From the sequence record OR805295.1: a stretch of DNA of 64,000 nucleotides; one strand, written 5' to 3'. Shown piece by piece: positions 1 through 54,831 of the stretch (the stretch's first letter is position 1; the number at the start of each line of letters is the position of its first letter). The notes beneath the pieces are model-generated. The model was not told the origin of the DNA. It saw only the letters and a program-made list of their open reading frames with translations, and made no database searches. The position numbers were made by a program, and so were the translations under genes.

Positions 1-2
1 AA

Positions 3-18484: not shown

Positions 18485-18844
18485 ATGATTTCCAAAATTC
18501 AAATTGTATACGGAATATATCTTCCTACTGCTGATGCAAAAATTATATACGAAGACTCGGAATACGAATCTAATAAAATAAATAAAAATATTAGATTATT
18601 TGCAAATGATGCATATTTAGAAGATAAGATTTTAGAAAATAAGGAATTCGAAGATAATCCCTATGTTCCGCACTTTTATGGTATTTTTTGTAAAGAATTC
18701 GATAATGACCAAAGTGCATACTTATATAATGTTCCCAAATCTTTTATAGATGAATATAATAATGTAGCTCCAGCTATTTTGGCTAGACTCGGTTATTTAG
18801 ATAGAGTTGCAGGAAAACAACATTGTAGAATAATCTACGAATAG
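18485..18844 (+). CDS. Hypothetical protein
   Basis: 119 aa ORF downstream of consensus promoter. Confidence 0.75.
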   Translation: MISKIQIVYGIYLPTADAKIIYEDSEYESNKINKNIRLFANDAYLEDKILENKEFEDNPYVPHFYGIFCKEFDNDQSAYLYNVPKSFIDEYNNVAPAILARLGYLDRVAGKQHCRIIYE

Positions 18845-18858
18845 AATTAACTAGTTTT

Positions 18859-18948
18859 GGAGAGGTGATAGAGTCTGGTTTATTATACTAGTCTTGAAAA
18901 CTAGCGGATCGAAAGGTCCCGTGGGTTCGAATCCCACCCTCTCCGCCA
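18859..18948 (+). tRNA. tRNA-Ser(UGA)
   Basis: CTAGT-CT-TGA-AA-ACTAG, long variable arm, G73, CCA. Confidence 0.95.
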
Positions 18949-18953
18949 AATAT

Positions 18954-19043
18954 AGATACTTGACCGAGTGGCTTAAGGTGCTTCCCTGCTAAGGAAGTGA
19001 GTTTGAAAAAGCTCCGTAGGTTCGAATCCTACAGTATCTGCCA
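18954..19043 (+). tRNA. tRNA-Ser(GCU)
   Basis: CTTCC-CT-GCT-AA-GGAAG, long variable arm, CCA. Confidence 0.95.
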
Positions 19044-27936: not shown

Positions 27937-30900
27937 TATATTATATATTCAGAATTTTATAAGAAGTAGAAAATTAGAAGCAGAATACGGATGTATAGTT
28001 ACCATTAATAATAATACAGGAGCTAGAGAATTTACAGCATATCATCTCAAAAACTGGCATAATTGTTCATTTATATCCTATAATAATTGCAGTATAGATA
28101 TTATTGCATTATGTAACCATACACACACGATAGCATATGGAGCAGATAATGCAAGTTTTATAATAAAAAATAATAACAGAAATATACTACTGTCAGTAGT
28201 TGGTACGAATATGACATATTCGTCTTGTTATTCATCTTCTGTAATTATAAATATTTCTGTTTTATTATAAAATGAATTTAATATTTTGTATAGCTAGCAT
28301 TGATAATATACAAATAGGTATAGACCGGTCAATCGGACATATAAACAATATAATATATATTCGAACTAGCCCCTCTAATGATATAATCAAATATATAACA
28401 GAAGTAAAATATGGTAAAACAGTATCACTTATGTTAAATCTCGATACATCAGTATTTAAAGAATTATTTATTTTTATTTTGTCATGTAAATGTAAACACA
28501 TCACTGAACTAAGAATATACGATAAAGTAGTATTTTATTTTTATTCTGATAACAGAAGATCTTTAACAGATTTGTTATATTACATAGGTCAGTGACAGTA
28601 CATTTACAGAAAAATATAATATCTTATGTATTATTCATTATAAAAACTCTGTTGTGTTATTAAGTGTTGTATGTTAGTGTGCAAGTTAATTAAATGCGGA
28701 ACACCAAATGGATATTATTCTTTTTATATCAAATAATACATACTATATAATATCAACGAGTAATAGCACATTCTTATTATACAGATTTGATCAAAAATGT
28801 ATCTATGTTGCAACAAAAAATCTTAATTCACATCCGGTAGTGATAGACGACGGAAGTAATGGCTGGGGGACAATATATGAGATTCCCGCACTAGTTCAGT
28901 TTTACACAGATATTTTTAAATTTTCTGTGCATCACGAATTAATTCAAATATATGTGCTCACAAAAGTAGGTCAATTTTTCTCTAAGATTGTTACTTACTA
29001 ATATAATTGTACAATACATAGGTAATTTGATGGACAATATATTTTATATTTCGTACGAGATAGCTAGTTGCCGGTATTCTAGTCCAACTACATTTCAATT
29101 AATTAATAAACACAATAGAGAATTTTATGCAATACGTTTGGCTGCAGGATACCCAAGCGACATTTTCGATTTTGATTGGAAACAAAAAATCTTATTAACG
29201 TCTAAATATTGTAATAAGCTTTTATTTCTTATTAGTAGAGAAAAGATACAGGTAACTACCAAGTTAAGGATATTTTATTGCCTTAGTAACGTATCTGCTA
29301 AATCGGATCAAGTTACACTATGAATATCATACCATTAATTTTAATTAGTGTATACTAGTTATTGTGACACTATTAAATATGTCAATTAGATAAAATAAAT
29401 TATTAATGAAAAATCTATTTCCTACCGGATGCATATTTAATATATTGGTATTATCTTATCACACAGATACAATATATGCTGCATGTTACTCAGATTGTCG
29501 TGTTATTGCACTAAACAGTTATTATACATACTATATACCTTTAAATGACTAAATTAATACTTACAATTTCTATTAATACCAAACAGATAGCATTATTAAA
29601 CGATGTTGTGCATTTTCGAAATTATAATAAAGCGGTATACTTTATAAATTTTTTATCTAAATCTAAGTCATTAATTATTGTGGACGAGTTAATAACAGAT
29701 AGTTTTATTATCTTTTATATAAGTGAAAATTGTTCCGAAATTTATGTCACCCCTAGATATGCTTTTATATGTAATTTCGATGGGGTTGGGTTTTTTAGAT
29801 CATAACTAGTTGTGTTAATTAGGATAACTATACTTAATGAAATATGATTTTATATTACATATGAGTAATAACACAAATTGTATTATATTCGACACAAGTA
29901 TTACCTTTGTTGACAACAAAGGTATATTCTTTTATAAAATAATACCAATACACTTGCATGGTATGTGTAATTTTCCTTATATAGATAACAGTTGGTCAAA
30001 CTATATTTCATTACCTATAATTATACAATATTATACAAATAAACTGGTATATTTACCGTCTATTATACTTTTTCGTCAAAATAAATCTAATATATCAGCA
30101 GATACTGTATTTCGTACAAATATGTTATGAACGATGAATTAATACTATTGTTAAGTAAAGAGACTTATATAACTTCATTTTCTCATAACTGTGTAGACTT
30201 GTTCAGCGCTGCTGGAATTATATTTTATAGCATATCTATACCATACATGGGTTCCCGTGCTGCTAGCAGAATACATCATTTATATTTGTGTGTGTTTACA
30301 CTATCTCCTTTTATAATACAATCATTTTGTCGTGTAATATTCGATAATAAGTATACAATTGGCATAGCACATAATGGCACACTTATATGGAAAGGTCTTT
30401 ACCAATAACTTTTTCAGTTGCTATAACATGCACAATGTGCAATAATAAAAAACAATGTGCAATTGTGAATAAAATACATGAATATTATCATTAACATTCA
30501 AGCATCAACATCCGAAATCTTCTTTGATACAGACTGTATCTCGTTAATGACTAGCTTAAGCGGTTATGTTCTTTCGATAAACCGAAGAACAGGAAAAGGC
30601 GCAGTTGTACTTCATAACATAAAGTTAGATTCCATATATCGTATTCTACTATTACAGCACACAACTACATCACTTGTTGTATGGGGTGCTATAGACATTA
30701 AAGTATCATTTAAAGACATAGCCGATGAATACATTTTCCTTGCTATAGGAAGAAGATATTATCACGGCGAATGGTTAAAATAATTCTGACTATGCATAAA
30801 ATTTATTATGACGAAATTTTAGAAATATCTAATAAAGCTAGATTAATTGTAATTTATTCTGGCATATGTTCTATATACGCAAAACCTTCTGTTTATTATA

Positions 30901-32556
30901 ATGTAAATTATAACTTTTATAGTAATCCATTTAGTTTGTGGAATAGGGCAGTATTTATAGCATCTAAACAATGCGGGTACATAGCATTCACTGATAACCG
31001 GGTGCGTATATTAACTGATAAAAAAATAATGTGGTATTATAATTATCTATAAGGTATAGATCGAAAAATGGTATATAAAATACCGAACGACAAGTGTATG
31101 TTGTTAATATTTCTGAGTAGTATAGCTGATACTATATCTATAGAAATCAGTTTTAGAAAAAGAATTAGAAAATGTTTGTACACACTAAAAATATACAAAG
31201 GTGATAACAATTGCATATTTATAAATGGCGTACTATTATTTAAAAAAGTTATATGTAACGATATGATAATTCCTATTTTGATACAATCAGTCACAAGATC
31301 AATATCAATGCATAACGACTTCTTAGAAGTATTTTCTAACAAATATTATTTGACGTTATTTAGAAAAATGACATAGTCTTAAATGGGCAAAAATGCATGA
31401 TTGTTATACTTCTTTCACACTTTACACATGAACTAAATGCACAGTTTAATGAATTAGAACTTACTGTGTATGGTAATAGATTAGCGCAAATATATCCAAC
31501 AGCATTTATAGATACTAACATTCTATGGCATTATATGAGTAAACCTAATTTCTTACTATTTTATATTTCTAATAATGCAAAAACGATAAAATTAAACCAT
31601 TCGCCCCGAATATTATTATATAACTCTCCCATACCTCACTATATTTAAAAAGATAAGTAGGTGAACTATCATTTAAACAGTTGTTGTACAGAAACTCTTT
31701 TAATGAGCAGGTTAATGTCCATCTAAACCCTATGTGCAACCTACCATTTATTATATCAAGTAATTCCCACAAACTAATCTACGGACAGTATTTTAACAAT
31801 ACAAGAGGTCCAGGCATATACATTGCTAATATAAATGGATTTGTGTTTCTATACTCAGTTGTTACTATTTCTAATTTTCAAATATGTTTTAGTATGCTTA
31901 ACGAAATAGATCCTTTGTATTTGCAATACAAATGCGATTCAATAAAAACAATAAACACACTTATGTATTATAGACTAAATGTCAATTCATTACTTAATAC
32001 AATGTTATGTAAAGAATATTATGAATTTAATACTTGAATTATTAAGAAACACTAGTAAAATCATACCGCTTGATGGTCTAAATGCTGCTAGATTTATTCT
32101 TGTAAATACCCATTATATAAAAATAGCATCTTTTTGTTTATCATTTTCTACATGGACCTGCCAGACATTTTTAAGTATAAACCAGTTTCAAATGTCAGAA
32201 TCTACGTTAGTTATCATATCTAATAAAATAAAGAAGATCAAAAGAGTAAAAAAATCATACGCTTTAGTTTTTGACGAATCATATATTCTGTTGAAAATCA
32301 AATGATAATACATATCTCACATTTAACACATATAATAAATGCATATTCTAAATATATAATCGTTACTAATAAAGCTAATGAAATTATACTTTGCAATTAC
32401 ATATATAACCAAACTAAAATTTACATTAGCAAATTATTACTAAATATCGATTTAATCTGTTATATTCAACATAACACAAAAACTATTAGTTATCCCATTG
32501 TACATAGCCATTTTCTAGCGTATCCATATCTTTGCAATAATGCCTTGGTTGTATAA
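27929..32556 (+). other. Array of ~15 two-unit ILxLQ family ORFs (85-115 aa)
   Basis: MDIILFISNNT, MTKLILTISINT, MKYDFILHMSNNT, MNIIINIQAST...ILLLQHTT, MNLILELLRNT, LICYIQHNT. Confidence 0.65.
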
Positions 32557-32558
32557 TT

Positions 32559-32846
32559 ATGGATTTTATTTTCCTACTACAACATAACACTTCTATTATA
32601 TTATTTAATAATATATCATATGGTAGTATAGAATTATACACAAAAGACGAAGTTCCAGTATTAGACATAGAAATATCAAATTCTATGTACATATATCAAG
32701 GTAATTTTAATGACAAAACTGCAATACTCCATCTACAGCAAAATACACACCAGATACAAATAGATATAGATATTATAAAAATGAGAAACATGTACTATAA
32801 AGACATTTATTATATTGTATTACATGGATTATATGGATTATATTAA
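32559..32846 (+). CDS. ILxLQ family protein, recent duplicate A
   Basis: MDFIFLLQHNT...AILHLQQNT. Confidence 0.75.
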   Translation: MDFIFLLQHNTSIILFNNISYGSIELYTKDEVPVLDIEISNSMYIYQGNFNDKTAILHLQQNTHQIQIDIDIIKMRNMYYKDIYYIVLHGLYGLY

Positions 32847-32912
32847 ACTTATCTCCGCAGAAGTAAATCAAATATATCCATATCTTGTCAACAATACTTT
32901 GGTTATATAATT

Positions 32913-33194
32913 ATGGATTTTATTTTCCTACTACAACATAACACTTCTATTATATTATATCGTAATAGTATTATAGAATTATACACAGAAGACGAAATGC
33001 CAGTAATAGACATAGATATAACAAATTCTATGTTCATATATCTAGGTATTTTTAATGACAAAACTGCAATACTCTATCTACAACAAAATACACACACGAT
33101 ACATAAAGAATCATCAAATTCTTATTATATGATAAGAATGAGAAATATGTACTATAAAAACATTTATTATATTATAACACATGGATTATATTAA
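32913..33194 (+). CDS. ILxLQ family protein, recent duplicate B
   Basis: Near-identical to 32559-32846. Confidence 0.75.
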   Translation: MDFIFLLQHNTSIILYRNSIIELYTEDEMPVIDIDITNSMFIYLGIFNDKTAILYLQQNTHTIHKESSNSYYMIRMRNMYYKNIYYIITHGLY

Positions 33195-34022
33195 ACTTAT
33201 CTCTTCAGAAGTAAATCAAATTAAAAAATCCACCCACCCCGGTGGCACCCGCAACGGCTTAACACTATATAACGTACATGACCAACCTATAATAGAAATA
33301 AAGATCCAAAAAATAATATCCCGTGCATATGTGCGTGCAAACTACGATAAGTTGTGTAATGAAATCTGCATTCTTCATATGCAAAGTCAAACAACTTTAA
33401 TATCTACCACACGGAACTCACTAGTAATCTTCACTTCCCACTATATAGTTCACTCTATCATATGAACCTAATCCCCGCACTGCAAAATAAAACTAGATAT
33501 ATATCCCAATTTGATACTACTTATCGTTTAATTAACTCAGATAGAAAATGCTTTTATCTTATAACACGCAAGAACAAAAAGACCACAGTAGACATAGACT
33601 ATAATATCTTCAATGATATTTTCGGTATATTACATTTACAGTCTAAAACACATATACTAAGACGTTCATATAACGTAATACAAGTACATGATGTATATTC
33701 TAATTTAACACATTTTGCCATAGCTCGGCAATAACCATAAATGAAATTTATTATAACATTACAATCATACACAACTACAATACAGTTTCTAACTAATGAT
33801 TTTATATTATATTCTGATAGAAATAGATTATTAGAATTAGGTATATACAATAACAAATTCAACTGTTACATACATATCAATAATTTTAATAATAACAATA
33901 TAATCATGTGTTATCTTCAGCATATAATTTATACAATACACATTCATCCCTTTGTTTTATCGATGTGTAATAGTAATTGGTTATCAGTTAATACAAAATG
34001 TTATTCAAGAAGACTTTACTAA
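33181..34022 (+). other. Three ILxLQ family ORFs (33181-33465, 33462-33734, 33741-34022)
   Basis: CILHMQSQT, GILHLQSKT, MKFIITLQSYT. Confidence 0.7.
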
Positions 34023-34063
34023 AGCAATGAAGATGAATGATAGAAATCACTACACTATAACTA

Positions 34064-34519
34064 ATGAGTGATAATACTCTAATAGATAGAAACTATAGTG
34101 TACAAATAATGAGTGATAATACTAATAGAAGCTATAGTATACAAATAATGAGTGATACCAATAGATGGTGAATAATGAGTGATACTGAGTGATACTAATA
34201 AGATAGTGATAGTGTACAAATAATGAGTGAATTATATAGTACATATTTCGGTGAATACTGATATAATATCAATAGATAGCTATAGTGTACAAATAATGAA
34301 TGATAATACTAATAGATAGTGATACTGATATAATATCAATAGATAGCTATAGTGTACAAATAATGAATGATAATACTAATAGATAGTGATACTGACAGAT
34401 AGCTATAGTGTACAAATAATGAGTGATAATACTGATAGATACTAATACTAATACTGATACTAATAGATAGCTATAGTGTACAAATAATGATTGAATTATG
34501 TAGTACATATTTCGGTGAA
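34064..34519. repeat. Iteron-like AT-rich direct repeat array
   Basis: Seven copies of ATAGT(G/A)TACAAATAATGA; perfect 67-bp tandem 34255-34388. Confidence 0.9.
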
Positions 34520-34896
34520 CCCTAACATCACCAAAGAAAGAAGGACCAAAATTTTGGAAATCTTGCTCTATAGGTCCCATTCATTTTCTTCCCAGTTACA
34601 TTTATATTCTTTCCATTTCTAACCATTTTTATAGATTTTTTTTGGAAAAATCCGTTTTCTGCTATATAGGGACCTTTTTATAAAATATAAGTTCTTTTTC
34701 AATAAAAAATATTTTTTTTGAAAATTTCCAATTCTTGCTATATAGGCCGGTTTCATTATATATACCCGTTTGCATAACATATACGGAATATAGTATGCTA
34801 TACGTATATAAACCGTGACTCTAGACAACTCACTTACTGTACGCTCGTTAATATAATTCCATTTCGTAGTATAACGTATATACAGGAAAGCTAGGT

Positions 34897-37484
34897 ATGG
34901 ATTTGATACTATTTCTTCAACATAATACTGTAGAGATGGACTATAGTGAATGGTACGTTCGTCTTAACAACAAGAATGGAAATAATATAGCTATGATTAC
35001 AGGTAACGGTATTAGACTGTATTATAGAAATATCAATTGCTTACTTGGTATTCTTCATTTACAATACTGTAATTATAATTTTTTCAAGTATATGGGCAAT
35101 TATATTTCTTTTACATTTGTTGAAAATAATAGGTTTGTACATGAAATATATGTTGATTTGAAATAATATATGGATTTCATACTATTACTTCAATCTCATT
35201 GCAATGAGATTGTATATACCAATCAAATCATTGATATGCTCAATGCGCATAATAGGCAGTTCGTATATGGAATTACGTTGCCTATGGGAAGAAAACATGT
35301 GTCATATAATGCATATTGTTTGTATAATAATTTATGTGATGTGATAGGGTTATTGCATATGCAATCTATACTATCGTTAATAGAAGTTAAACATTTAAAA
35401 ACATTTTCTGGTAAAACAGATATTATTGTTAATATGGTGTTTGTTAACGGTTATCTTCAACATGCTATATTCTAATAGTTGTGTCTAATATATGGACTTA
35501 ATATTATTATTTCAGTCTCGTTGTTGTAAGATTTGGTATTCAGATTATATTATAGATATGATCGACTATAGTGATTATACTATAGTATCGTTATTACGCC
35601 CGCCGAATGGGCGTATGTATGCCTATTGTTCGTGTAATAGTATAAACAACGAAACTAGTATAATGCATTTGCAGAATAGCATACATTCATTACAAATAAG
35701 TTATAGTACCCGTTTTATAATGTGTCGTATGACTAATGTGTATGAAGATCTAATTCAATATATTAGTATACTTTAGTAATGTATTTTATCTTGTTTATAC
35801 AGAGATTGTGTTGTTCGATTAGAAGGGCTTCACATGGATTCGATATTTTTGATACAAATGAAGTAGCATATTCATTAATAGATCATAATGGTTTCAGTAT
35901 GAAACATTTCGTTTCATACTCTGTTATAAATGATGTAATAGGAATTATACATTTACAAGTGCATACAAATAAGTTATATTTTCTTCATGAAAAACATCAA
36001 ATGGATATGATTTGTTTTCTAGATAGTAAAGGCGGTCATTTTTTTAGTTTGTAGAGGACGGAATTTGTGTTATTAATATTAATGCTTCAGCGTAATGTCG
36101 AATGGATTCTTTATACTGATTGTGAAATTCGACTTGTTCTGCCCGATTATAACACGTTATATCGTTTTCTAAATCAGAAAAAGAACATTAATGGGTATCT
36201 AAATTGCCATGCTAGTAATGACATTGTAAGTACATTTTATTTACAGTACAATTGCGATACTATATCATTTAGTAGATTTGATGAATTTATGATACTAAAC
36301 CACAATGGCGTAACAATTTATGGCTGGTGACTAGCATGGATATTATATTGATTCTTAGTAATGAAGTTATAAGAATACAAGGTTGTTTTTATGATATAGA
36401 AACTTTACAAATAAGGTTCTTCAATAAATACGACTCAATATATTTTTGTAATAAAATGGGAGGATTTGTTAACTATAAAACATTTCCCAATGAACTATTA
36501 TGTATAATTCATTTGCAGCAGAATACACATAGGTTGATAACACACAGTAAATGTATATTTTTTGATAGTGTAGATTTTATTTCTATTCACTGGGAGACTT
36601 TGTTTGACACAAACGAATATGTATAATGATATGAATTATATATTACTAATTAGTAACCAGTCTAAATATATTTCGTTGAAGGCACTTGGATTAACTGTAA
36701 AAACACGTGAACCAAGGTTAACTCATTATATTATATTTTAAATATGAACGAAGAATATGATATATTATATTTGTCTAACAATACTATGCAAATAACATTT
36801 CGTTTTTCAGTATATTGTTTTTATGATAAAACTCGTAGTATTATATATTGTCAATAAGACAGAAATATAAATGGATTTAATATTAACACTTCAACATAAA
36901 ACTGTGCTAATATCACAGTTTAGTGCATTATTTGTATTTCAAAATATAAACAGTGATACTATATTTTGTTTGGATATAGGTAAACATGTATATTATTTTG
37001 AAATAATATTCAGGTTATATAATAACAAGAATGGCATGGTGTATTTGCAACATGCCATTAATTCTATTAAGTTTACCCTTAGTTTATATTATCATACAAT
37101 TCATGGATATTCTAGTATGCCATCTATATATATGTATGATAAAAAATATGCTATTGTACACGTACCATATGTTAGGAATACTTAATGGATCTTATATTAT
37201 ACATTCAGTACAGTGCTCATAAAATAGAAACTGTTTATAAATCATATCTATTTTATAGTAATAACTATTCACTTTATTACAGACTGTCTGTATATAAGAG
37301 ATTATTGGTACCATCAGGTAGTAAATCATATGCAAGGGCTTCGGCTGAATATTCTGCTATTACAGACAAAATAGGAATGATACACCTACAATCGAAAACA
37401 CACGTAATATTATTTATTAATGACGGTATGTGCATTCACGACAAATCGTATCAAACACTCCATTATATTATACCAAAGTTATAA
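34897..37484 (+). other. Eight two-unit ILxLQ family ORFs (34897, 35170, 35492, 35779, 36067, 36327, 36871, 37185)
   Basis: Mostly MD(L/F)IL-x-(L/F/I)Q starts plus internal G(I/L/M)(L/I)H(L/M)Q. Confidence 0.8.
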
Positions 37485-37716
37485 TGTTCATAAGTTTTAT
37501 TCCGCCTGTTGCAATGTTGATACGACTACAATCAAATCTACATATTATCTGTTTTGATTCTATTTATGATAGTATAGTGTTTTGTGATAAAGACGGTGAC
37601 GAAATACATTGCTGCTTATGGTAGCGTGTTTGCATTTAACGCAAAAACATGTTATACAGTATTGTTTGTTGAGTATTTTGACATTGTTGTTTCTAAAAAT
37701 CTTTTAAAGGATTAAT

Positions 37717-40700
37717 ATGCATAATATATTTAAATTATCATATTGTACAAATATGTTTAAATTTAAAGTATTATGGGATCAAAAAGTATACCTATGCTCG
37801 TTTATGTCATTGCGGTATACTACCCTATATATTTCTGCAGGTCGTATCAGATAAATGGTAACAAATATATTAGAATTAATGTATGTATGTCACCATACAT
37901 ATAATATAACAACTAACGGCTACTATAACATTATCTTCTTAAATAAAGATAATAATATTATCTTTGTTTTGTATTAAAACAAATGGGAATATTTCTCTTA
38001 TCACGCAATACTTGCTACATTTGTGTTATACATGTCAGACGTATTGTATACAAGATTAAAATGTATGACAGACATGGCAATTATGTGTTTACAATTAATG
38101 TTATCTAAGAACATATTAAATTATATAGAATTTGGTTGTATGTAATACTGTTTAATAATGACAACAGATATTGATAAAATAACATACATTTCATTTAACT
38201 CATGCTATATATCAGTTAATCGTTTTAGTGTTATTATATATTATGAGTACGGTAGATTGATTTTATATGATGATACCCCCGGGCTTATATAAGAACGTAT
38301 TCTACATACAGTATAATGTGCGTCATATCAGCATATATTATTTTGATGCATGTGAATGTAATATATTACAAGTAGAATGCAATAATTTTCTTACTCTAAC
38401 ATATAAATTAAATGAAAAAACCAATAAGTAATGTGGTTGAATTATCGTTTAATACGCACTGGTTTAATACCAATTATATAGCTAGTGCTCACTGTTTAAT
38501 ACTTTATAATGCGTCGTCATATCCTATACATTATGTTCGTTTACACACAAACAGGCGTTAACACTTATGTTGCCGGTATCAATTCATAATATAGTTTGTA
38601 TTCAACACTATCTTAATAGATGGTATACTAGAATATCCACAACAGGTATTAATGTGTATTCAGATTCATATGTTAGAATTAGAATAAATGTTCATAAATA
38701 AAAATATTATAAATTATGATATATTGCAGGTATCTTCATGCGCACATAGAATAGATTCATCGCTATGTAGCACATATCTATTGGCATGCATTTATAATAG
38801 TAATGAAAAAATTATTATAATTAGTGTTGCATATCTAAGATGAATGGTATAAAAGATATAATAGAATTTTCATCGCATGCATACGAAATATGTGCAAATA
38901 CAGCAAGACTTAGAGATATAGTATACTACTCGATACTCATAAAAGCAAAAGACGGTCTTGCATTTTATATGGTAGACTCGTTTGCATATATAACATGACC
39001 AGTATCCTTGAATGTTCTTACAACACTTCTAATATTGTGTTTCGTTTTTGTAAAAACAGTGACATTTTAGTTGTGAACTTTCTAAACAAAAATGCTGACA
39101 TACATTTCATTGTAATAATTAGATACAAATAAACATATCGTTAATTACTAATACATAGGAGAGTAATAAATGAATAGAGAAGCAAAGAAAAATGTTTCTA
39201 TATTTGTTATTCAGAATCATACTTTTAGAGTTCATGTTGTGCGATATGATCCTGCGAGAATTTCAATATATCTCTCACTTGTGCATAATTGCGTTGCATC
39301 TTAAGAACTATATCTGTATAATGTAGGTTACATTTACATGTATAGGATTATCTTTCATATAATATATGCTTATTAACTATACGACATGTATTGAATTACT
39401 TTATAGTATTGTATGATTCGTAAAAATATAGTTCTAATATCACATAACACGTCAAAAATAATATTAGAAAGAAGAACAAGTAAAGTATTACGTGTTTCTA
39501 TGTTTAAATCAATTGGAAAATACTACTACCATTATTATACGGCGTGTGGAAATATATAATGCAAGATCATCATTTCACTACACTGTTGTATATGTCTAAT
39601 CGTGCAGATAGAATAAAGATTTTTCGACAGCCTTCCTGTCTTATTGTATATATTAAGTCAGGTATGTTATATATTAATAAACAATTTTTAAAATGTTAGA
39701 ATATATAGATACTCTCAAATATAATTACATTTTAACTGTATGCAGCGGTGTAGAGTCTATATCATTCGAATCATTTACTAGATCAGTAATATCAGTTTCC
39801 ATAATATATAATAATATTACTATCTTTCCATGTCAAACCACACGAACTATACTGTATGGTGTATAATCTTATTTTTATTTCTTTTAATGTTTCTTTAATT
39901 AGTTTTTCTATTTTTAATAAAACATTTGAAGTTTATATTTATGGAAAAATGTTATTGGTAATTTATTATACAGGACTGCATATATGTTAGATATATTGCT
40001 ACGGTTCCAACGCAGAGTGGATACAATTAAGGTGGAGTTAATATGGCGTCACTTGCATTTTTATGAAAAAGCCGGCGAGGAGTTAGAGTTATTTCATATT
40101 ATATTTCTGCCGCCCGATCACCGAAGTATTAATTAACAAAAACAAGTTGTATTTTTCGGCATAAAAATTTATGAATAAAGATACAAACAAAGAATCACCT
40201 ATTATTAAAGAATTATATTTTATATTAAGATTGTAAGTAAAATAAAATACTTTTAGAATCTAAAACTAAAATGATCGATTGGGTATTTAAATTGTCTGCT
40301 AGTTGCTACGAAATAGACGGACAACACAGTGAGTCAATAAGAATATATAATTCATATTGTCTTTTAGGAACTATACAATGTTATTGTGCTCAGTTAAAAA
40401 TAAATTTATATAAATTTTAATATTGTGGGAAGAATTCTTTTAAATAGGCATACTATATGAATGATCTATTACACTACCAACTCACATTATGTTCCATATC
40501 TTTGCAGAAAGCTCTTTTTAAGTCAGGCAATGTGTATTACATTCTAATTGAACGTAACGACAGCGGTAGGTATTCCCGAGATGTAAAAATACTTAAATGA
40601 TATGCGTATATTTGTAATATCACAAAATTGTATGACTATCAGACTTTTTTATCATACATATTTCATTAAAGATGTAAATTATGATTCAATTTGTGTATTA

Positions 40701-41120
40701 TATAAAACGAATAGTAGAATTGTAATACATCCGAGTTTTACAGTAGATGAATATATTCGATCTGTCTTATAATTCTTCATTTATTTTGATGAAATCGAAT
40801 AGATTATACATTAGTAACTATAATTATTCTGTAGGGGCTACATATGTATTACCTGCAATAACAAAATATATACATCAAACATTCTATGTAAACGCTGCAA
40901 TATATAGATTTTTAGATACAGGTATACTAGTATGAAATTCAATATATTTAAATTGCAAAGAGGATGTCACTTTATAGATTGTCATTTTTATGACATTCTT
41001 AGATTTTCAAAACCTACATATTTTCGAGATGCTGATAGAATAACTATATTTTCATTAATAGGTACTAATAGTATCAGAATTTACGAGGATATGTATAAAG
41101 GATATGCACAAACCATATGA
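37717..41120 (+). other. Head-to-tail array of single-unit micro-ORFs (40-62 aa)
   Basis: Hand-translated: 37717-37854, 37855-37977, 37983-38108, 38158-38292, 38270-38431, 38412-38561, 38567-38701, 38688-38843, 38840-38998, 38995-39132, 39170-39304, 39559-39699, 39693-39866, 39984-40136, 40271-40420, 40457-40600, 40602-40772, plus track ORFs 40747 and 40932. Confidence 0.7.
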
Positions 41121-41428
41121 TTGAAATATTAATATTTTCGAGTGCTAGTGATTATATTAGTATAAGACATGATATGGCACGGCTATATAATCTTAATGGT
41201 GTTAGTGAATTAATATTTGTATCAAAACCATACAAATATATTATATTAACTAATTTAAAAAATCATATAGGTATATTCTGTATTTCAAATATAATAAGTG
41301 AAAGGGTGATGGGAGATATTACTAGTAACGAATGTTGGGCTTATCCTTGGCCTCCAGATACTGGCATAGATGTATATATTGATTTCCTGTATAAAAATGA
41401 TGAGCTTTCTACTAAACACACAATATAA
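41117..41428 (+). CDS. Two-unit ILxLQ family protein
   Basis: EILIFSSASDYI...GIFCISNII. Confidence 0.6.
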   Translation: MIEILIFSSASDYISIRHDMARLYNLNGVSELIFVSKPYKYIILTNLKNHIGIFCISNIISERVMGDITSNECWAYPWPPDTGIDVYIDFLYKNDELSTKHTI

Positions 41429-41464
41429 CCATAGACAAATAAGTGCATTATGCTAATATATACA

Positions 41465-41870
41465 TGCTTACTAAATAGTTACTTGTTAAGTAAGTTAAAA
41501 AGTCTGTAACAGTGATGTTACAGGATACACAGGCAAATACGGTTGGAAGATGCTGTGTAAAGAACAAATATCCAGCTCATTCCTAGGCATTATAGCCTAC
41601 ACAATATACTTGAATGGGCATAAAAACTTCCAAAGAACCTTCGAAATTTTCTCATAGGATAGTGTATTAGAAGGAATGCACTATCAGGAAGCTGTAGGTG
41701 ATGGTTGCTATCCCAGACAGTCCTTTCTAAAATACTTTAATATGATATAAAGTTCTATGCAACCGTATACATGCTGTAAGATATTAGATTACACCATGTA
41801 TTAAACGTAAAAGCAAAACCTTCAGTTAGTAATCTCGCAGTGAAGGGGGTAGGTGAGTGCTACCCAAACT
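41465..41870 (+). ncRNA. Candidate structured ncRNA or long leader
   Basis: TAGACA-16-TGcTAATAT promoter, no ORF, several hairpins. Confidence 0.45.
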
Positions 41871-41908
41871 CAACAAACAACTAATGGTCTAGAAAAGGTA
41901 TAGTATAC

Positions 41909-42316
41909 ATGCAACATACTCACATTCGTTTCTACAACGAAGAAACTCAACAGATCGATAACCGCCGTGGCGCTACTGTTGCCTGGGAAACCGCCGGCAA
42001 CAAGATCCGTATTTCCGTGGCAGCATGTTCGGAAATGGATAACTTCAACCGCAAGACCGGACGTGAACATGCTGCTAGCCGTCTCGAAAGCGGCGACTAC
42101 ATCGAGTTTAACGGCACCGAACTTCTCAATGCACAAATGTCTTCTGTAAGTCATGTGCAGTCTGAAGGTCTCGTTCGTGCTATGTGCTTCTTGCTAGCAC
42201 AAGGCAAAGGCGATCTGTATTACCCTGCAAGCGAAGGTCAGCTTCGCAGCGAAGCCGAGTGCAATAGCTACAACGCCCTCGAGTACCTGAAACACCAGAT
42301 GGGCATTCATCAGTAA
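41909..42316 (+). CDS. Hypothetical protein with host-like codon usage
   Basis: GATVAWE...VAACSEMDNFNRKTGR; GC-rich. Confidence 0.85.
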   Translation: MQHTHIRFYNEETQQIDNRRGATVAWETAGNKIRISVAACSEMDNFNRKTGREHAASRLESGDYIEFNGTELLNAQMSSVSHVQSEGLVRAMCFLLAQGKGDLYYPASEGQLRSEAECNSYNALEYLKHQMGIHQ

Positions 42317-42330
42317 GTATTCGGCCATTC

Positions 42331-42371
42331 GGAATTGCGATTTAGGTTTTGGAATTCTAAATCGCAATTCC
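42331..42371. repeat. Perfect 15-bp inverted repeat
   Basis: GGAATTGCGATTTAG-11-CTAAATCGCAATTCC. Confidence 0.85.
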
Positions 42372-42592
42372 GGTTTCCAAATTCAATTTTAGGCACAAAC
42401 TCGGATCCGCATTTGCATTTTGCATTTACATTTTGTGTTCTGAGTGTATATGCAAAATGCAATCGCGCATGTTGTCGATGCATTGGCTAATCTTTTATTT
42501 TTGATAGTTTAGAAAAGATTAAGAACAGAAACTATCTGTAAATTAATAAAAATAACATTTACATTACATACACATATGCATATACTATATAC

Positions 42593-42870
42593 AAGTTATG
42601 CGCTGTTGCATACGTAAATACCTCCTATGTTGTTTAGATATGTCGATTCTGGTATAACCAGATAGACCTAAGGATGATGCTAGTGATTCCTTAGTATTGT
42701 ATATTCTAGCTGAGTATAAAGAGTAAGGGGCTTTATACAAATAACAATTCCCTAGGCAAGATATACCGCTCCGTTGTGCTGACGAGCATAATTTGCCCAG
42801 ATACAGAGCACGTGACTGGTCTGAGGAGCATTTATATCAGAAAGGCAGACTTATGTTTGCCTTTCTTTTT
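42593..42870 (+). ncRNA. Candidate ~275 nt ncRNA
   Basis: TTTACA-17-TATACT (42558-42586) and terminator at 42839-42870; no convincing ORF. Confidence 0.55.
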
Positions 42871-42889
42871 GAGCAGATATTCTCTTATT

Positions 42890-42973
42890 CACTTCCTTAT
42901 TCATTTCCTTATTCATCTCTATTTCATTTGTCACTTCCTTATTCATTTCTTTATTCATCTCTATTTCATTTGT
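42890..42973. repeat. 2 x 42-bp pyrimidine-rich direct repeat
   Basis: CACTTCCTTATTCATTTC(C/T)TTATTCATCTCTATTTCATTTGT twice. Confidence 0.9.
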
Positions 42974-42980
42974 TATTGCA

Positions 42981-43092
42981 AATAAGACTAATTCTTATTT
43001 GCGTTTGTAATTTCATTTGTTATTGTAAATAAGACTAATTCGTATTTGCATTTGCAACGAAAAAGAATATGCAAATAATAACTAATCTTATT
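42981..43092. promoter_or_regulatory. Three Fur-box-like 19-mers
   Basis: AATAAGACTAATTCTTATT, AATAAGACTAATTCGTATT, AATAATAACTAATCTTATT. Confidence 0.65.
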
Positions 43093-43267
43093 TGCATTTG
43101 CACTGCCTATTATATGGATTGGTAGCATACTTGGAAATGGATAGTAAATAAGTAGTTGATTTGTTTATAAATTTTAATTCTATATCGTACTGATTGACCT
43201 TGCTATATATAGCTCGCGCGCGTATACAAGATGGTAAAAAATAATTTAAAAATATTTTAAAAAATGC

Positions 43268-43391
43268 TTGACTTTCCATTACTACGACCTTAAAGTGCGA
43301 ACTGTAGACGCAGTGTGTAGAGCGCTACATAGTAAGCAACGCAGAAAGTAAACAAAAAATGCTTGACGCAATGCAAACTAGGCTCTACACT
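43268..43391 (+). promoter_or_regulatory. Two tandem sigma70 promoters
   Basis: TTGACT-17-TAAAGT and TTGACG-17-TACACT, each with A-tract UP element. Confidence 0.85.
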
Positions 43392-49184: not shown

Positions 49185-49342
49185 TGCATATTTAGAAAGG
49201 GAATTATAATTCCCTTTCTTTTTGGATCTATATTAGCAAATGCTAATTAATCTTATTTGCACAAATTTAATCCTATTGTGTTTTCTATTTTGAAGTGCTA
49301 CATTACATGTAGTTGCATAAAACTATACACAGGAGAAATGAT

Positions 49343-49891
49343 ATGTGGGATATCAAAGATGGGGATGATATCGAAGTCGAAGCAGTTATGGATGAACGAA
49401 GCTATGAGTGGACCGGCAAGTTACGTATCATCCAATATCGGACCCTTCAATCGGCTCAGTGGCGTGTTATTATCAATATAGTAGAATTTTGGAGTCATTC
49501 TACTGAAAGTATACTGAAAGAACTTGGTATAGAAGCTAAACACATTACTAAAGGATATGCCACACTTAGTATGGTTCGTTTCCCGGATGTTGATTACCTG
49601 TTTAGTGTAACACCCGATAATGCAGATTATGTAACTGTTAACCACAGTGCAGTAGATATTTCTGACAGTTGGTTTGTTGCAAAAAACATAAAAGCAGTTA
49701 TGTATCATTTGGGATCTGAAATCCAGATCACTCCGTGGTTTGTGCGTAAAGATAGTAGCGAGACAAATTTCAATTGTATTGATCGATTAGTAGCTCTAGT
49801 AAAAGAGAATACTGATGTTGACACGTATCAGTACATCAAGGTAGGTTGTCCTGAGGACAAGTCATTTTACTTTGCGTGGATAGACAAATAA
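49343..49891 (+). CDS. Hypothetical protein
   Basis: ATG 7 nt after AGGAG. Confidence 0.75.
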   Translation: MWDIKDGDDIEVEAVMDERSYEWTGKLRIIQYRTLQSAQWRVIINIVEFWSHSTESILKELGIEAKHITKGYATLSMVRFPDVDYLFSVTPDNADYVTVNHSAVDISDSWFVAKNIKAVMYHLGSEIQITPWFVRKDSSETNFNCIDRLVALVKENTDVDTYQYIKVGCPEDKSFYFAWIDK

Positions 49892-49980
49892 TTCGTTTGC
49901 TATACGTACTAATACGTTGTATACTGTTAGTACGCATAGTAGAAGTAACACATAACGTTTTGATTTAATGGAGCCTTAAC

Positions 49981-52287
49981 ATGAGAGAAGAGTTTGAAGC
50001 CGCGATCTTCGCGGAAGTGAATAAACAGCGCGCCGCCGAAGGTGAATTTGTCCTTCAGCATCCAGAGGGGCTATTTGCCCGCGATGACGATGGTTCCTAC
50101 TTGATCCGCTGGGTCAAGAGCGCATGGTGGGCCTGGAAAGCCAGTCGTGTGGCACTGACGCCCCGGACGCCCGATGTGTGCAGCGAGTGCAATGACACCG
50201 GGAAAGTCTATGACGAAAGCGGCGCCGGTCCGTGGAGTTGCTACGCCTGTACCGATAACCCGGAGGTGATCGGCTACGCAAACGGCGATGAGTTGGACAA
50301 CATGCTGGATGACCGCACTGCTGTTCTCTCTCCAAGGAAGACCAGTTTTCACACCGTGCCAGTGTATCGACTGATCCACACCCAAAACAAAAGTTTTCAA
50401 TAAAATCGATATGGAACTGGTCCTTCAAGAAGCCGAAATTGAGGTAGTGAAATGAGCAGACTGACCGCTGAACAAGCCCGTGACATAGCGCGAGCGAAAG
50501 ACGATGTCGATGCCATCCTCAACGACATCGCCAAGGCAGCCGCAGAAGGAAAGTACGTGTACACTACCCGCGCCTATGGGTTCGGTACAGGCGGCGGACG
50601 GCGCAGCGACGCGATCCTCAAAGTGTTGCGTAGCCTCGGCTACGACTGTGCGGTGCATGCTGAGGGACGCCAGTCTGTTGACCTGTGGCTTGAAGTGAAA
50701 TGGGGAGACAAGCCATGACTAACAACCCCGGAGATTCAAAAATGATCGTAGAAAACGCCAAGCAAGCCGCCGAAGACTTCAAAACTTCCATGGCTAAGAT
50801 TTTTCCGAATTACATCGCCAGGGCGTCGGTTTCCGATAACCTTGGTCCGGCGATGACAATTTCGTTTGCGAATGTCGGTTGCGCTTCCGAAGCCCCTAAC
50901 AGCATTCTGATAAATGCGAGCGGTTACATGCGCTTTATGATGCATTTGTGTGACAATTGCGGGAATGTATTGCCAGAAGGTTCGCCGGTAGAAATTGAGC
51001 TGCTAATGTGGTCTATCCCCTATCGTTCGGAAGTAATCAAGTTCCGCAAGATCAAGGGCAAGACACCAGCCGAAGCTATGCAAAAGCTAGTCAAGTGGTT
51101 TGAAAAAACGCCGAAGCTATCCGGGGTCTGTAATGGTCTCCACGTAGGACACGCAGAATGAACATTGTGTTGGACAAATTGCTGTTTGGCGGTTTCATCG
51201 ACCAGCACCGCAATGAACTTGCCCAGCAACAACTGAATCGGTTGTTTGCCAAGTACGGTGAGCCGAAGATTGGTATCACACGGGCATGCTTTCTATCTAA
51301 GCATTACGTCCTGAAGTTCCCGATTAATGACAGGGGTGAGCGGTGCAACGATTGGGAAGGTAGCTGTTCCGGCAGCTATTTGGCACGCGGACGCTGGCTA
51401 GAAATCGGAGGCTTCATTTGCGTCATGCAAGAGCGTTTGGTTGAAGTGGATTGGAAGAACAACACCCATGCAAACTTTCCTGATTGGGTAGGCAGCATAG
51501 ATTGTGGTCAAGTCGGCTACGATAAACATGGCGTTCTGAAAGCGTATGACTTCGGGTGAAGCATGACCATCAATTTGTTTGTTGTCAACATAAAGAACGA
51601 ACCTATCCCAACCGACCACAAGTCGATACTCCGCTATCTTGGCCTTAGCCTGCACACGCAAGGCCGTCGTGTATCTGCCAAATTCAGCAGCGGTAAGTTG
51701 AAGCTGAACAACTACAACATCGAATTTTTTCACATGGCGGAGATGATTCCATGACCGACACCAACAAAATAAAAAAGCTAGCAAAACTGGACGAGATCGA
51801 CAGGCTCAGGGCAGAGCGAGACGCCGCCCTGGCCAGGGTCGTAGAGCTGGAACGCGGCAAGGTCTACGTCGAAGCCCGGCAATGCGACGAGTGCCAGCAT
51901 AGCGGGATCAACGATTCCGCCACGGGCGTGGCTGCCTGCCACGAATGCGACTGGACCGGACCAGAGCCAGAAGAGGATAAGTGCCCCGGTTGCCAGAGGG
52001 AGAATTGCATGGCCGCAGCCTGCCCGCAGTGTGGTGCCCGATATGTCCTTGTTGCCAGCGAAGAGATAGCCGCCCCTGTAGCCCAGGCTCAGCACAGCGT
52101 ACCAGAGGAATGGCGCGACATGCTGGCCGAGCTGCAATGGCATTACGAGCCGTATGACGATCACCACCACACGCCCCAGGGCTTTTACTGCCCGCGTTGT
52201 GGGAGAGAACAGGACGAAGGACACAAGCCGGGATGCAAGATAGCCGAGTTGCTCGCCACTGTCGACCTCAAAGAAGACAAGAAATAA
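49981..52287 (+). other. GC-rich gene island (49981, 50452, 50715, 51158, 51563, 51751)
   Basis: Abrupt rise in GC; overlapping co-directional ORFs; 51751 has several CxxC motifs. Confidence 0.85.
51158..51559 (+). CDS. Minimal protein-kinase-like protein
   Basis: GITR...YVLKFP...NDWE...SIDCGQVG...YDFG. Confidence 0.45.
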   Translation: MNIVLDKLLFGGFIDQHRNELAQQQLNRLFAKYGEPKIGITRACFLSKHYVLKFPINDRGERCNDWEGSCSGSYLARGRWLEIGGFICVMQERLVEVDWKNNTHANFPDWVGSIDCGQVGYDKHGVLKAYDFG

Positions 52288-52328
52288 AATTCTAAATTAC
52301 TCGAACAAACATAATAGGAGCAGCATAC

Positions 52329-52559
52329 ATGAGCCTCAAATATAACGGATATGTCTTTAACATTAGTATCCTTGGCCAAAACGAAGCTATCAGTGAATAC
52401 GCCTATCCTACCGATGATCCTGAAAGTGATAAAAAGAAAGCTTTTTTGGCTGCAATGACAAAATTCGTCGAATCGGATGATTTCGAGAAATTTACTAATC
52501 AAATGTATAACAATTTCTCGATTAATGTTCAAGCACTAGTTTCTACGGCTACGGAGTAA
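52329..52559 (+). CDS. Hypothetical protein
   Basis: AGGAG RBS, 76 aa. Confidence 0.75.
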   Translation: MSLKYNGYVFNISILGQNEAISEYAYPTDDPESDKKKAFLAAMTKFVESDDFEKFTNQMYNNFSINVQALVSTATE

Positions 52560-52761
52560 ATTTTCAATTATTATACTATTTCAGTTACTTGTATCAGCAA
52601 CAAGACTGCAGAAAATAAAGAATAATTAATTCCAGTTATTTGTTCCTGTTTTAAGTGACAATAAAGAAGGTATGACTACTTTGTCTTTGATGCTAAGTAG
52701 TAATTATCCTTACGATAACTACACACATATCAACTAGCTATTATGATAGAGGCAAAAATAA

Positions 52762-52938
52762 ATGAATATCTTAAAACATATATATTGGGCTGTGCGTTAT
52801 GGTGATTGGAATATAGGTTGGGATCCAACCTGGGGTAGCAAACCCAATGAACCTTTTATTTGGTGTAAACCGATATATTATGACGGACATCATTGCTACT
52901 TGCGAGTAGGCTACTTTTGGATAGGAGTAACATACTAA
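52762..52938 (+). CDS. Small Trp-rich protein not in the ORF track
   Basis: 58 aa MNILKHIYWAVRYGDW...YYDGHHCYLRVGYFWIGVTY. Confidence 0.65.
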   Translation: MNILKHIYWAVRYGDWNIGWDPTWGSKPNEPFIWCKPIYYDGHHCYLRVGYFWIGVTY

Positions 52939-53179
52939 CATTTACAATATATCTATAAAAGAATATATTAGTAACACAATTGTTAAATTGCAAACACTAA
53001 TTAATCTTATTTGCATTTGCTATCTTGTATAATAGAAACGACTTCTAAACATGGATATGAGATGGAAAACTTAGATAGGATCTCTGTTACAAATTTTTGA
53101 GTTAAAATACATAGTAGTTTTGCTATTATGTGTTTATAGAAGTTTAATAACAGAACTAAAACATAAAGGATTGTCTGTT

Positions 53180-54831
53180 ATGAAAAGTTACGCAAAGTTT
53201 TATGTAGGAACAAACATTTATGATGCCGAAGTGCCGGATTTAGACATAAACATGCCAGATGCAGAACTTTTCGAAGTAGCATTGCATCAAATGGCAGTAC
53301 AGTGGTCTAGCACCGCCGGGCATCCGCATCACAAGGATGCAATGCGTAAAGACGGCAAGGTAGCCCGGAGTAAAGAACGGGTGTATATTCGCGGCAACGG
53401 TTGGTCCGTTTCGTTACATAGTCCCGAATTTGTAGAAAAACACTCGGCATACCTTGCCGCAGCGGAGTGGAAACTACTAACAGATTTGCTTGTATTTGAC
53501 ACCTGCTGGAACGCTAATTAGTAATTCTCTCTACACAGGAGAACGGCAATGAATACTATCAGTGTAAGAAATATGCGTTATATTGTACGTGGTTTTGTTA
53601 CTCATGCAATTGCCCGGGGTTATTCAGTTTCCGTTTATGAAGGGGGTGATTGGGCGATCGAGAAGAGTACTTCTGTAAAAGATATTATGAATTCTATCAT
53701 GTCTACTGACAGTGATACATTCTGTATTTATAATGCAGAGAAAGTGAAGGTAGGTCATGTATATTGCATTTATTGCAATAGTGATTACGAAGTTATTGCA
53801 GATTACACCGATTCACCTCTTATGCAATCGATTCTCGTCGAAGCTCTACGCAGAGCAAATCGAATAGAAGAACTGAGCTGAGAAAAAGAAGCAGGAATTA
53901 TTCCTGCTTCTTTTGTATGTTACAAGTTAAACAAGATTAATTTGCATTTGCTATGTAATAATATTTTCTATTGAATTAAATATTACATGTGTTACTATAT
54001 GCACAATGCTGTTAAACAAAGCGATAAATTAATAGCTATGGCAAATAAATTACATATCATCTGTGCAAAATGTGGTAGCACTCTTATAAACATAAAAATA
54101 CCAAAAGTATGTGCAGATGATCCATTAAATGTAGTATATTTTTCGTGCGAAAACTGTAAGGAACTTACAGGCATATACGAATGGACAGAAACAAATAATC
54201 GCAAAGTAGTTGACGATAGGTAAGAAGTAAATGGAAGCATATACAGATTATCCTATCCTAATGATCGGCGATGTTCCGCATGAAGAAGCACCTATAAGAA
54301 AAATAATTATAAAAGGTTATGATTTTAAATATATCTGGGCAGTATACCATTATATGGATTTAATTCCTATAAGGGTTCAGATAAAACGCTGTTATGTGTA
54401 CGAAACTCCGGGTAGAGTAGGTTATGTAAAATCTATTAGAGAAGAAGTATTAAGAAAACGCAAAAAGAAACAACGTGACATATATGAATACGATACATAT
54501 CAAGATGAAGACGATTTTTGGAAAGGAATGTATTAAAATGCATAATACTCGTATTGTTGTTCGACTCAATGTTATCACTCCTATTTCAACTGCTAACGGC
54601 GTTGTAGTTGATTCAGTAGTCCGCGGGCATCGAGCAGGCATTAAGCAAGGCAAACAAATGTATCATGTTTATTCTATTCAAACAGGCGAGTATCTCGGTT
54701 TGAAATCAGAAGACGACGTAAGTGAAATTAAACCGTCTTCGTATGAAGAATTTCTTACTCCGAGAACACTTACTTCAAACGAAGTAGAACAAGTTAAATC
54801 TTCTTTCGAATGGTACGAAGCTAACATTTGA
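53180..54831 (+). other. Early-type small genes (53180, 53549, 53987 CxxC ribbon, 54231, 54538)
   Basis: RBS-bearing ORFs separated by hairpin terminators near 53884 and 54835. Confidence 0.75.

Follow-up and report, generated by a model that had tools for sequence, protein, structure and literature searches.

We analysed a window of 64,000 nucleotides (nt) from the sequence record OR805295.1 and, within it, the segment 37717-41120 (3.4 kb), in which 21 open reading frames (ORFs) starting with ATG and encoding 40-62 amino acids (aa) follow one another on the plus strand. With window positions 36000-42000 as a query, megablast returned a 100% match to Pseudomonas phage Paride (OR805295.1, record positions 160000-166000; a window position is the record position minus 124000) and matches of 96.2-97.6% to ten other Wroclawvirus records, namely PA5oct (two records), MIJ3, Deifobo, Ettore, Cassandra, Callisto, 30-2, 30-3 and PAC2. 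The genus Wroclawvirus (Arenbergviridae) is made of PA5oct-like jumbo myoviruses of Pseudomonas aeruginosa of about 287 kb. A preliminary description of the window had reported at least 17 such ORFs of 40-57 aa: their head-to-tail arrangement on the plus strand is found again and the peptide starts which it quoted are all present in the array, but the count and the upper size had to be raised. As it had also stated, the ORFs share a family motif, which lies within residues 0-13 in all 21 of them and consists of two hydrophobic residues, a variable one, another hydrophobic one, then S, Q or C, and an isoleucine six residues further on. We hold it very likely that the array is made of genuine micro-genes which are under selection and belong to one family.

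The 21 genes are listed below under their Paride names. Lengths are compared over an alignment of 12 sequences (ten genomes from GenBank and two metagenomic contigs from Logan, each with 96-98% identity to Paride); scores refer to a position-specific scoring matrix (PSSM) and to hidden Markov models (HMMs) which are presented further on together with the neighbouring "two-unit" genes of about 95 aa.

37717-37854, plus strand: Paride_0275, 45 aa; same length in 12/12; motif from residue 2; AlphaFold2 model with a predicted local distance difference test score (pLDDT) of 71.5, three strands after the motif
37855-37977, plus strand: Paride_0276, 40 aa; same length in 12/12; 0-nt gap to the preceding stop
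37983-38108, plus strand: Paride_0277, 41 aa; same length in 12/12; best micro-gene match to the two-unit HMM, E 9.5e-5; PSSM 15.2 bits
38158-38292, plus strand: Paride_0278, 44 aa; same length in 12/12; leave-one-out score 14.0 bits
38270-38431, plus strand: Paride_0279, 53 aa; same length in 11/12, one metagenomic contig having a shorter ORF; 5 synonymous and 0 non-synonymous changes
38412-38561, plus strand: Paride_0280, 49 aa from an upstream ATG, which is the PA5oct start, is ATG in 12/12 genomes and alone gives the motif; the Paride record starts at 38433
38567-38701, plus strand: Paride_0281, 44 aa; open in 12/12; in-frame 6-nt insertion in one genome
38688-38843, plus strand: Paride_0282, 51 aa; 55 aa in 10/12 through an in-frame 12-nt difference
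38840-38998, plus strand: Paride_0283, 52 aa; same length in 12/12; ATGA overlap with the preceding gene; no other micro-gene is called by all ten records
38995-39132, plus strand: Paride_0284, 45 aa; ATGA overlap; C-terminal end varies (45, 46 or 49 aa)
39170-39304, plus strand: Paride_0285, 44 aa; same length in 12/12; among the few with a 5-nt Shine-Dalgarno match
39413-39559, plus strand: Paride_0286, 48 aa; same length in 12/12; PSSM 10.7 bits
39559-39699, plus strand: Paride_0287, 46 aa; same length in 12/12; stop/start overlap of 1 nt
39693-39866, plus strand: Paride_0288, 57 aa; same length in 12/12; 7 synonymous and 1 non-synonymous changes
39856-39990, plus strand: Paride_0289, 44 aa; same length in 12/12; the most hydrophobic member, 19-residue hydropathy window 1.77
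39984-40136, plus strand: Paride_0290, 50 aa in 12/12 genomes; 13-nt insertion in four
40271-40420, plus strand: Paride_0291, 49 aa; same length in 12/12; preceded by the largest gap (134 nt)
40457-40600, plus strand: Paride_0292, 47 aa; same length in 12/12
40602-40772, plus strand: Paride_0293, 56 aa; open in 11/12; one frameshift, in MIJ3
40747-40935, plus strand: Paride_0294, 62 aa from an upstream ATG, which is the PA5oct start and brings in the motif; the Paride record starts at 40789; 62-65 aa through in-frame indels
40932-41120, plus strand: Paride_0295, 62 aa; same length in 12/12; ATGA overlap at both ends

The packing is dense. The 20 junctions comprise 11 overlaps of 1-26 nt, 4 gaps of 0-5 nt and 5 gaps of 36-134 nt; three of the overlaps are 4-nt ATGA overlaps and a fourth one leads into the next gene at 41117, in agreement with the ATGA and short overlaps of the preliminary description. 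ATG-ORFs of at least 35 aa number 24 on the plus strand and cover 90.7% of the segment, while 500 dinucleotide-preserving shuffles yielded 3.4 +/- 1.6 ORFs (9 at most) and 13.6% cover; on the minus strand there are 2. Stops make up about 7% of the codons in any frame and, by simple arithmetic, a frame of 45 codons would be open by chance in about 4% of cases. The comparison with shuffled controls, which had been proposed as a check, thus places both the tiling and the motif (see below) far above chance. A few slots had been described as broken by stops; Paride gave no confirmation of this. No remnant of the motif was seen in its two larger gaps, of 108 and 134 nt, and decayed units inside the gaps were rejected on this ground. 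No tandem or repeated DNA motif was found within the array.

The start codon is ATG in 252 of 252 cases (21 genes in 12 genomes), when simple arithmetic from the regional rate (243 changes per 2997 sites) predicts variation at about 5 start-codon sites. Length is constant across the 12 genomes in 15 of the 21 genes; the other six show in-frame indels, a shifted C-terminal end (0284), one frameshift (0293) or a shorter ORF in one contig (0279). The 243 substitutions in the frames divide into 95 synonymous changes, 147 non-synonymous changes and 1 new stop. We built a null model by resampling the same base changes 5000 times over the same ORFs: it gives 58.8 +/- 6.3 synonymous changes (82 at most) and 10.5 +/- 3.1 nonsense changes (2 at least). 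In the ten-genome set, a shift of the frame by one base yields 52 synonymous changes and 11 new stops, and a shift by two bases 33 and 14. Variation by codon position is 74/46/96, and indels are mostly of 3, 6, 9 or 12 nt within the genes vs mostly 1-2 nt between them. The pooled ratio of non-synonymous to synonymous variation (pN/pS) is 0.45 for the micro-genes vs 0.59 for the neighbouring two-unit genes. The annotated frame is the best by codon usage in 20 of the 21 ORFs, a result which is partly circular as the stops sit in the alternative frames. Given the excess of synonymous changes, the deficit of nonsense changes and the conserved starts, we concluded that the 21 ORFs are selected coding frames and not pseudogene debris. 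The frames are conserved in relatives, as the preliminary description had asked, and they are under purifying selection across the 12 genomes. The identity between micro-gene paralogues is about 19% and no repeat is left at the DNA level, hence the duplications are old.

The motif was examined independently of the array with a PSSM of 13 columns built solely from the halves of two-unit proteins. For 19 of the 21 micro-ORFs, its best match falls between residues 0 and 10; in the other two (0280 and 0294), the motif stands at the upstream ATG used by the PA5oct annotation. A loose pattern, which was written after the 21 sequences had been seen, has 23 matches vs 2.4 +/- 1.5 in shuffled ORFs. Among the 21 proteins, one column holds I 13 times, L 5 times and V 3 times, the central one S 13 times, Q 6 times and C twice, and the last one I 17 times; the codons vary at these columns, which speaks for a conservation of the motif at the protein level. 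With a leave-one-out HMM, 14 of the 21 micro-ORFs score above 95% of 241 background ORFs, when about one would be expected by chance; among themselves, the micro-ORFs do make up a family.

An HMM seeded with 13 upstream ORFs of 87-104 aa converges on 22 full-length two-unit members, located at 12623-13847 and 28708-37484, with zero decoy or minus-strand matches. The members and borders next to the array are the following:

32559-37484, plus strand: 13 two-unit genes (87-104 aa), HMM E 1e-14 to 2e-25
36631-36857, plus strand: short motif-bearing ORFs 0269 and 0270, within the upstream two-unit block
37484-37715, plus strand: variable border slot Paride_0273/0274, 46 and 29 aa
41117-41428, plus strand: Paride_0296, 103 aa (94 aa in 7/12 genomes), two-unit-sized, closes the array; N-terminal motif, marginal HMM similarity (E 0.009)

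In hhalign comparisons, the first and second halves of the two-unit proteins match at the motif (P 2e-4), and micro-proteins align with two-unit proteins over 18 N-terminal columns (P 2.4e-4). The composition is nearly the same in the two groups (13.3% Ile in both, 8.9 and 8.4% Tyr) and is unlike that of the long genes of the window. The reading that each micro-protein is one copy of a unit of about 45 residues, which the neighbours of about 95 aa hold twice, is therefore supported, though less strongly than the coding status, by the motif, the match between halves, the composition and the secondary structure predicted by AlphaFold2. The preliminary description had regarded the micro-genes as one-unit versions of the two-unit proteins; the motif, the composition and the models speak for it, the full-length HMM similarity is weak, and in the alignment to the two-unit halves which it had suggested, the N-terminal motif matches while most unit-HMM scores are low. 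Its estimate of about 60 genes in the family is a fair upper one: the loose motif occurs in 57 plus-strand ORFs in 12600-41430, vs about 4 expected, and in none in 1-12600, but membership backed by HMMs is limited to 22 two-unit genes and 21 micro-genes. The border slot 37484-37715 has an extra 110-119 nt (about one unit) in three genomes, is a single ORF of 85 aa in PA5oct and differs from Paride by a 4-nt indel in all nine other GenBank genomes, which shows an ongoing change between one-unit and two-unit forms. One can notice that, over ten genomes, the two-unit gene Paride_0267 (36082-36330) has 38 non-synonymous and 7 synonymous changes (pN/pS about 1.5); alone among the family members examined, it hints at diversifying selection.

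AlphaFold2 was run on a family alignment of 32 sequences. The model of a two-unit protein (35492-35773; pLDDT 78, predicted template-modelling score 0.56) displays a helix followed by strands, twice: a helix at residues 3-10 with four strands, then a helix at 54-63 with three strands, the short helix being the motif. In the model of a micro-protein (Paride_0275), three strands follow the motif and the N-terminus is not assigned as a helix. The predicted unit would thus begin with the motif, which is a helix in the two-unit model, and continue as a beta-meander of three strands, a picture which is supported, if more weakly, by these models. The highest 19-residue hydropathy window is between 0.4 and 1.5 in 20 of the 21 products and 1.77 in the remaining one; 12 of the 21 have an isoelectric point above 8.5, and the products are mostly basic. 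Membrane micro-peptides (holin-, toxin- or spanin-like) were rejected, as the hydropathy is too low and the models are rich in beta structure. We infer that the micro-proteins are small, beta-rich and not membrane-spanning.

Scans of the family against Pfam, PHROGs and NCBIfam gave no meaningful match, and a sequence search of the PDB with the family profile gave none. Foldseek, queried with the two-unit model, found no match at E<=0.001 in PDB or BFVD; the best hits had E 0.05 in PDB, with template-modelling scores of 0.2-0.36, and E 0.008 among viral models. An exhaustive HMM search over 1.84 billion representatives recovered the family's own paralogue clusters and a single helical repeat protein of 340 aa (P0023), which was judged to be a chance match to a short Leu/Ile/Gln-rich stretch. 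The clustering of Paride_0283 with a 555-aa protein was likewise dismissed as an artefact. Word-indexed searches with both profiles retrieved Wroclawvirus proteins only, low-stringency blastn retrieved the 11 Wroclawvirus records and no further relatives, and a scan of IMG/VR found no related loci. Judging from these searches, the family appears to be restricted to Wroclawvirus.

The ORFs themselves are not new. All 21 are deposited as "hypothetical protein", as Paride_0275-0295, as PA5oct gp012-gp032 and also in Deifobo, Ettore, Cassandra and PAC2; about 21 coding sequences (CDS) are called there, in 6 of the 10 GenBank records, vs 3-7 in 30-2, 30-3, MIJ3 and Callisto. The "gene desert" of the preliminary description is therefore an accurate image of the latter four annotations and not of the former six. 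In the same way, "undescribed" holds for the family relationship and not for the ORF calls: in the papers on PA5oct, MIJ3 and Paride we found neither the family described nor its unit structure or selection, and what is new is the family relationship, the ORF calls being public. The Paride annotation was made with PHANOTATE, a caller which favours tiling. The PA5oct and PAC2 orthologues of Paride_0286 are labelled "phosphoglucomutase" in GenBank; the label has no Pfam support and looks spurious. Past the array, at 41870-43371, the Paride record has a run of tiny minus-strand CDS (0297-0305), where the PA5oct record, curated with RNA-seq, has a plus-strand gene of 135 aa (window 41909-42316) and the highly expressed putative ncRNA001; the minus-strand calls are probably gene-caller artefacts.

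Over most of its length the window has a GC content of 26-33% and is coding almost wholly on the plus strand. The array, at 26-27%, is its most AT-rich part, and the Pseudomonas host has 66%. Positions 1-39080 of the PA5oct record are annotated as a long terminal repeat (39 kb), in which the array occupies record positions 3352-6769, that is, 3.3-6.8 kb from the left end. By this placement, which is that of the PA5oct annotation and not of Paride's own ends, the array would be present twice in virion DNA. The PA5oct record begins at about window position 34490, directly after a tandem repeat:

34062-34494, no strand assigned: tandem repeat with a 67-nt period, found by Tandem Repeats Finder, where the PA5oct terminal repeat begins

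This repeat has 4.8 copies, two of them identical, and is labelled "CRISPR" in the Paride record. Its copies abut head to tail without unique spacers between them, which makes the label doubtful; the repeat may mark the boundary of the terminal repeat, or a packaging or replication site. The identity between phages is 96.2-97.9% in the array region vs 98.2-99.5% in core genes, a divergence about twice as high and roughly equal to that of the early region downstream. Inside the wider family array, 12 tRNA genes lie at 14833-19043, three of them with the anticodon CAT. The codon ATA is used in the family 72-77 times per 1000 codons vs 46 in long genes. Since a phage TilS homologue is noted in the PA5oct paper (PMC7318152), one of the CAT tRNAs may be an ATA-reading tRNA-Ile.

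Evolved lines of Paride give an indication on dispensability. One of them has a deletion of 3,277 bp (PMC10761892, Fig. S5), which we mapped to window positions 10385-13661 approximately; it removes the two-unit genes Paride_0192-0195 together with neighbouring genes. The coordinate offset of that paper was set at 52,072 from a unique ATA-ATG site, and it is confirmed by the fact that it places the reported 67-bp deletion, by which an evolved line lost one copy of the tandem repeat, exactly on the perfect 67-nt duplicate at window position 34255. Hence some paralogues are dispensable in laboratory passage. No change is listed within the micro-gene array in the evolved lines (PMC10761892, Fig. 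S5). Both evolved lineages independently lost 3.8-4.2 kb at about 49240-53535, a segment which holds a GC-rich patch (51-54% GC at 50000-52000); in it, some 285 bp at 51823-52107 share 96.5% identity with smaller Pseudomonas phages that are unrelated, TH15 among them, a sign that this DNA may have been acquired.

We therefore favour, as the likely reading, a polycistronic array of 21 real protein-coding micro-genes which are one-unit kin of the two-unit family. Within the array there is no consensus-quality promoter, one weak promoter-like site and, on the plus strand, two weak terminator-like sites; because such signals are absent or few and weak, the array would be read from one long transcript. 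Ribosomes probably pass from ORF to ORF by coupling or re-initiation, since 15 of the 20 junctions place the next ATG between -26 and +5 nt from the stop and the Shine-Dalgarno signals are weak. The single units would probably pair as homo- or heterodimers and so form the pseudo-dimeric fold of a two-unit chain; this is the simplest model, as a lone unit of 45 residues with much Ile, Tyr and Phe would probably be unstable in monomeric form.

Several results weigh against this reading. A Shine-Dalgarno match of at least 4 nt precedes 24% of the starts vs 11% of other ATGs, and we did not retain these sites as support for translation, the enrichment being only weak. In PA5oct, gp34-gp105 are reported as highly transcribed early genes (PMC7318152). 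This list begins just past the array (gp12-gp32), and the text of the paper is silent on gp12-gp32 (PMC7318152); as the list begins directly after it, the array may be weakly transcribed early. The Paride proteomics concerns uninfected bacteria only. The six annotations which contain the genes come from ORF-tiling callers or from manual curation, and hence are not independent proof of genes. The comparators of the selection test are all 96-98% identical, so that the test spans a short time; the two Logan contigs, equally close (96-97.5% identity), add little depth. Stronger constraint on the motif than on the remaining protein was looked for and not seen, the motif being no more constrained than the rest over that short span. 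As to the kinship with two-unit genes, the hhalign probability is only 44%, and most micro-ORFs are weak against two-unit HMMs, whether full-length or half-length: just 1-3 of them reach E<0.01 with the two-unit HMM, and scores with the unit-1 and unit-2 HMMs are mostly 2-11 bits. The confidence of the AlphaFold2 models (pLDDT 78 and 71.5) is moderate.

One may ask whether the array is instead a graveyard of pseudogenes, broken fragments of two-unit genes which are open only because too little time has passed. The ORFs are indeed half the size of their neighbours, they lie in the most AT-rich region, which is about twice as divergent as core genes, four annotation pipelines ignored most of them, and indels of unit size and of 4 nt distinguish the genomes at the border slot 0273/0274. 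Yet the duplications are old, as told by the 19% identity and the loss of any DNA repeat, and every frame is open; synonymous changes are in excess, nonsense changes are ten times too few, all 252 starts are kept, and pN/pS does not exceed that of the intact two-unit genes. Simple splitting would moreover make unit-1-like and unit-2-like ORFs alternate, which they do not, and recently split two-unit genes were rejected for this reason. We consider such a graveyard very improbable. Some probability, still small, is left to peptides which are translated but irrelevant, the open frames merely keeping ribosomes on a long early transcript, for instance against premature termination or decay. The tight coupling of stops and starts at 15 of the 20 junctions, the weak Shine-Dalgarno signals, the absence of a consensus-quality promoter with just two weak terminator-like sites, and the lack of any homologue or known fold would all fit. 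What speaks against it is that the amino-acid sequence is itself under selection (95 synonymous changes vs about 59 expected), that 21 old paralogues have retained the protein motif while its codons vary, and that 22 longer paralogues elsewhere in the genome have the same motif and composition.

Hardly credible at all is, finally, an element acting at the DNA level, an AT-rich spacer near the terminus (for packaging, replication or host nucleoid proteins) in which the ORFs would be incidental. Its very low GC content compared to the 66% of the host and its position inside the terminal repeat, 3 kb from the 67-nt tandem repeat at the boundary, are what such an element would have. But it would neither keep 252 ATGs nor avoid stops in one frame per segment, the ORFs are asymmetric between strands (24 vs 2), the variation depends on the codon position (74/46/96), and the array is devoid of a repeated DNA motif or tandem repeat.

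If the array consists of coding micro-genes, what could they do? Tentatively, and by analogy with other phages, they might form an accessory, diversified set of small binders for host takeover or counter-defence rather than serve an essential function. We lean on the site in the terminal repeat, the early-gene neighbours, the restriction to the genus, the faster divergence, the unit-sized differences in copy number and the dispensability of paralogues; as a host-takeover or counter-defence repertoire, the array nevertheless remains a doubtful assignment. A bolder and distinctly unlikely extension can be conceived, in which an orphan alpha/beta unit of about 45 residues and of unrecognised fold, carried by at least 50 genes over about 29 kb (some tenth of the genome), would provide micro-proteins that combine freely as homo- and heterodimers into the two-unit fold, as a library of binders against variable host targets such as defence systems. 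If true, this would be a repertoire strategy not described for phages.

Whatever their role, the micro-genes and the two-unit genes make up one genus-specific family without detectable homologue or known fold, and about a tenth of a genome in one uncharacterised family is a notable gap. Proteins below 60 residues are routinely missed, and 4 of the 10 deposited genomes of the genus leave most of the array unannotated. Wroclawviruses (PA5oct, Paride) are studied as therapeutic candidates, Paride for the killing of dormant Pseudomonas aeruginosa. The array also offers a compact natural test set for the detection of small ORFs and for the behaviour of a domain as a single unit vs a tandem pair.

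Large phages with small accessory genes in their terminal region are already known. What is unusual is one orphan family of at least 50 genes with a run of 21 genes for single-unit micro-proteins. In the Bacillus phage SPO1, the host-takeover module consists of about 24 small genes in a terminal redundancy of about 13 kb. The likeness lies in several respects: a dense cluster on one strand, some two dozen small genes of unknown fold, a terminal repeat, a large myovirus and an accessory nature. However, the SPO1 genes are not known to be paralogues of each other whereas the Paride array is one family; their early promoters and ribosome-binding sites are strong and experiments tie the genes to host shut-off, whereas the signals of the Paride array are weak; and no similarity to the array was found outside Wroclawvirus. 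The pre-early (first-step-transfer) region of T5 lies in the T5 terminal repeats, where small genes occupy the leading end; the array may hold a comparable place in a genome with terminal redundancy, but the pre-early genes of T5 are few and not known to be related to each other, and no homology was detected. The gene-sharing network of PA5oct does link it to T5 (PMC7318152).

The tandem families and gene accordions of large DNA viruses also present diverged tandem paralogues towards the terminus, and in Paride, as in them, the copy number differs between close relatives (0273) and members are dispensable in the laboratory. Those are, however, eukaryotic viruses with larger proteins of known domain types, and the Paride duplications are old, with no DNA similarity left, which does not make a recent accordion. 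Small phage genes (<50 aa) predicted at scale are, like ours, micro-proteins backed by comparative signals and not by experiment; they are mostly isolated, whereas here 21 paralogues are contiguous and have two-unit relatives. Lastly, PUR repeats and VOC/glyoxalase modules contain an alpha-plus-beta unit twice per chain. The Foldseek matches being weak, this is an analogy only, but the architecture of the PUR and VOC type suggests that single units could dimerise.

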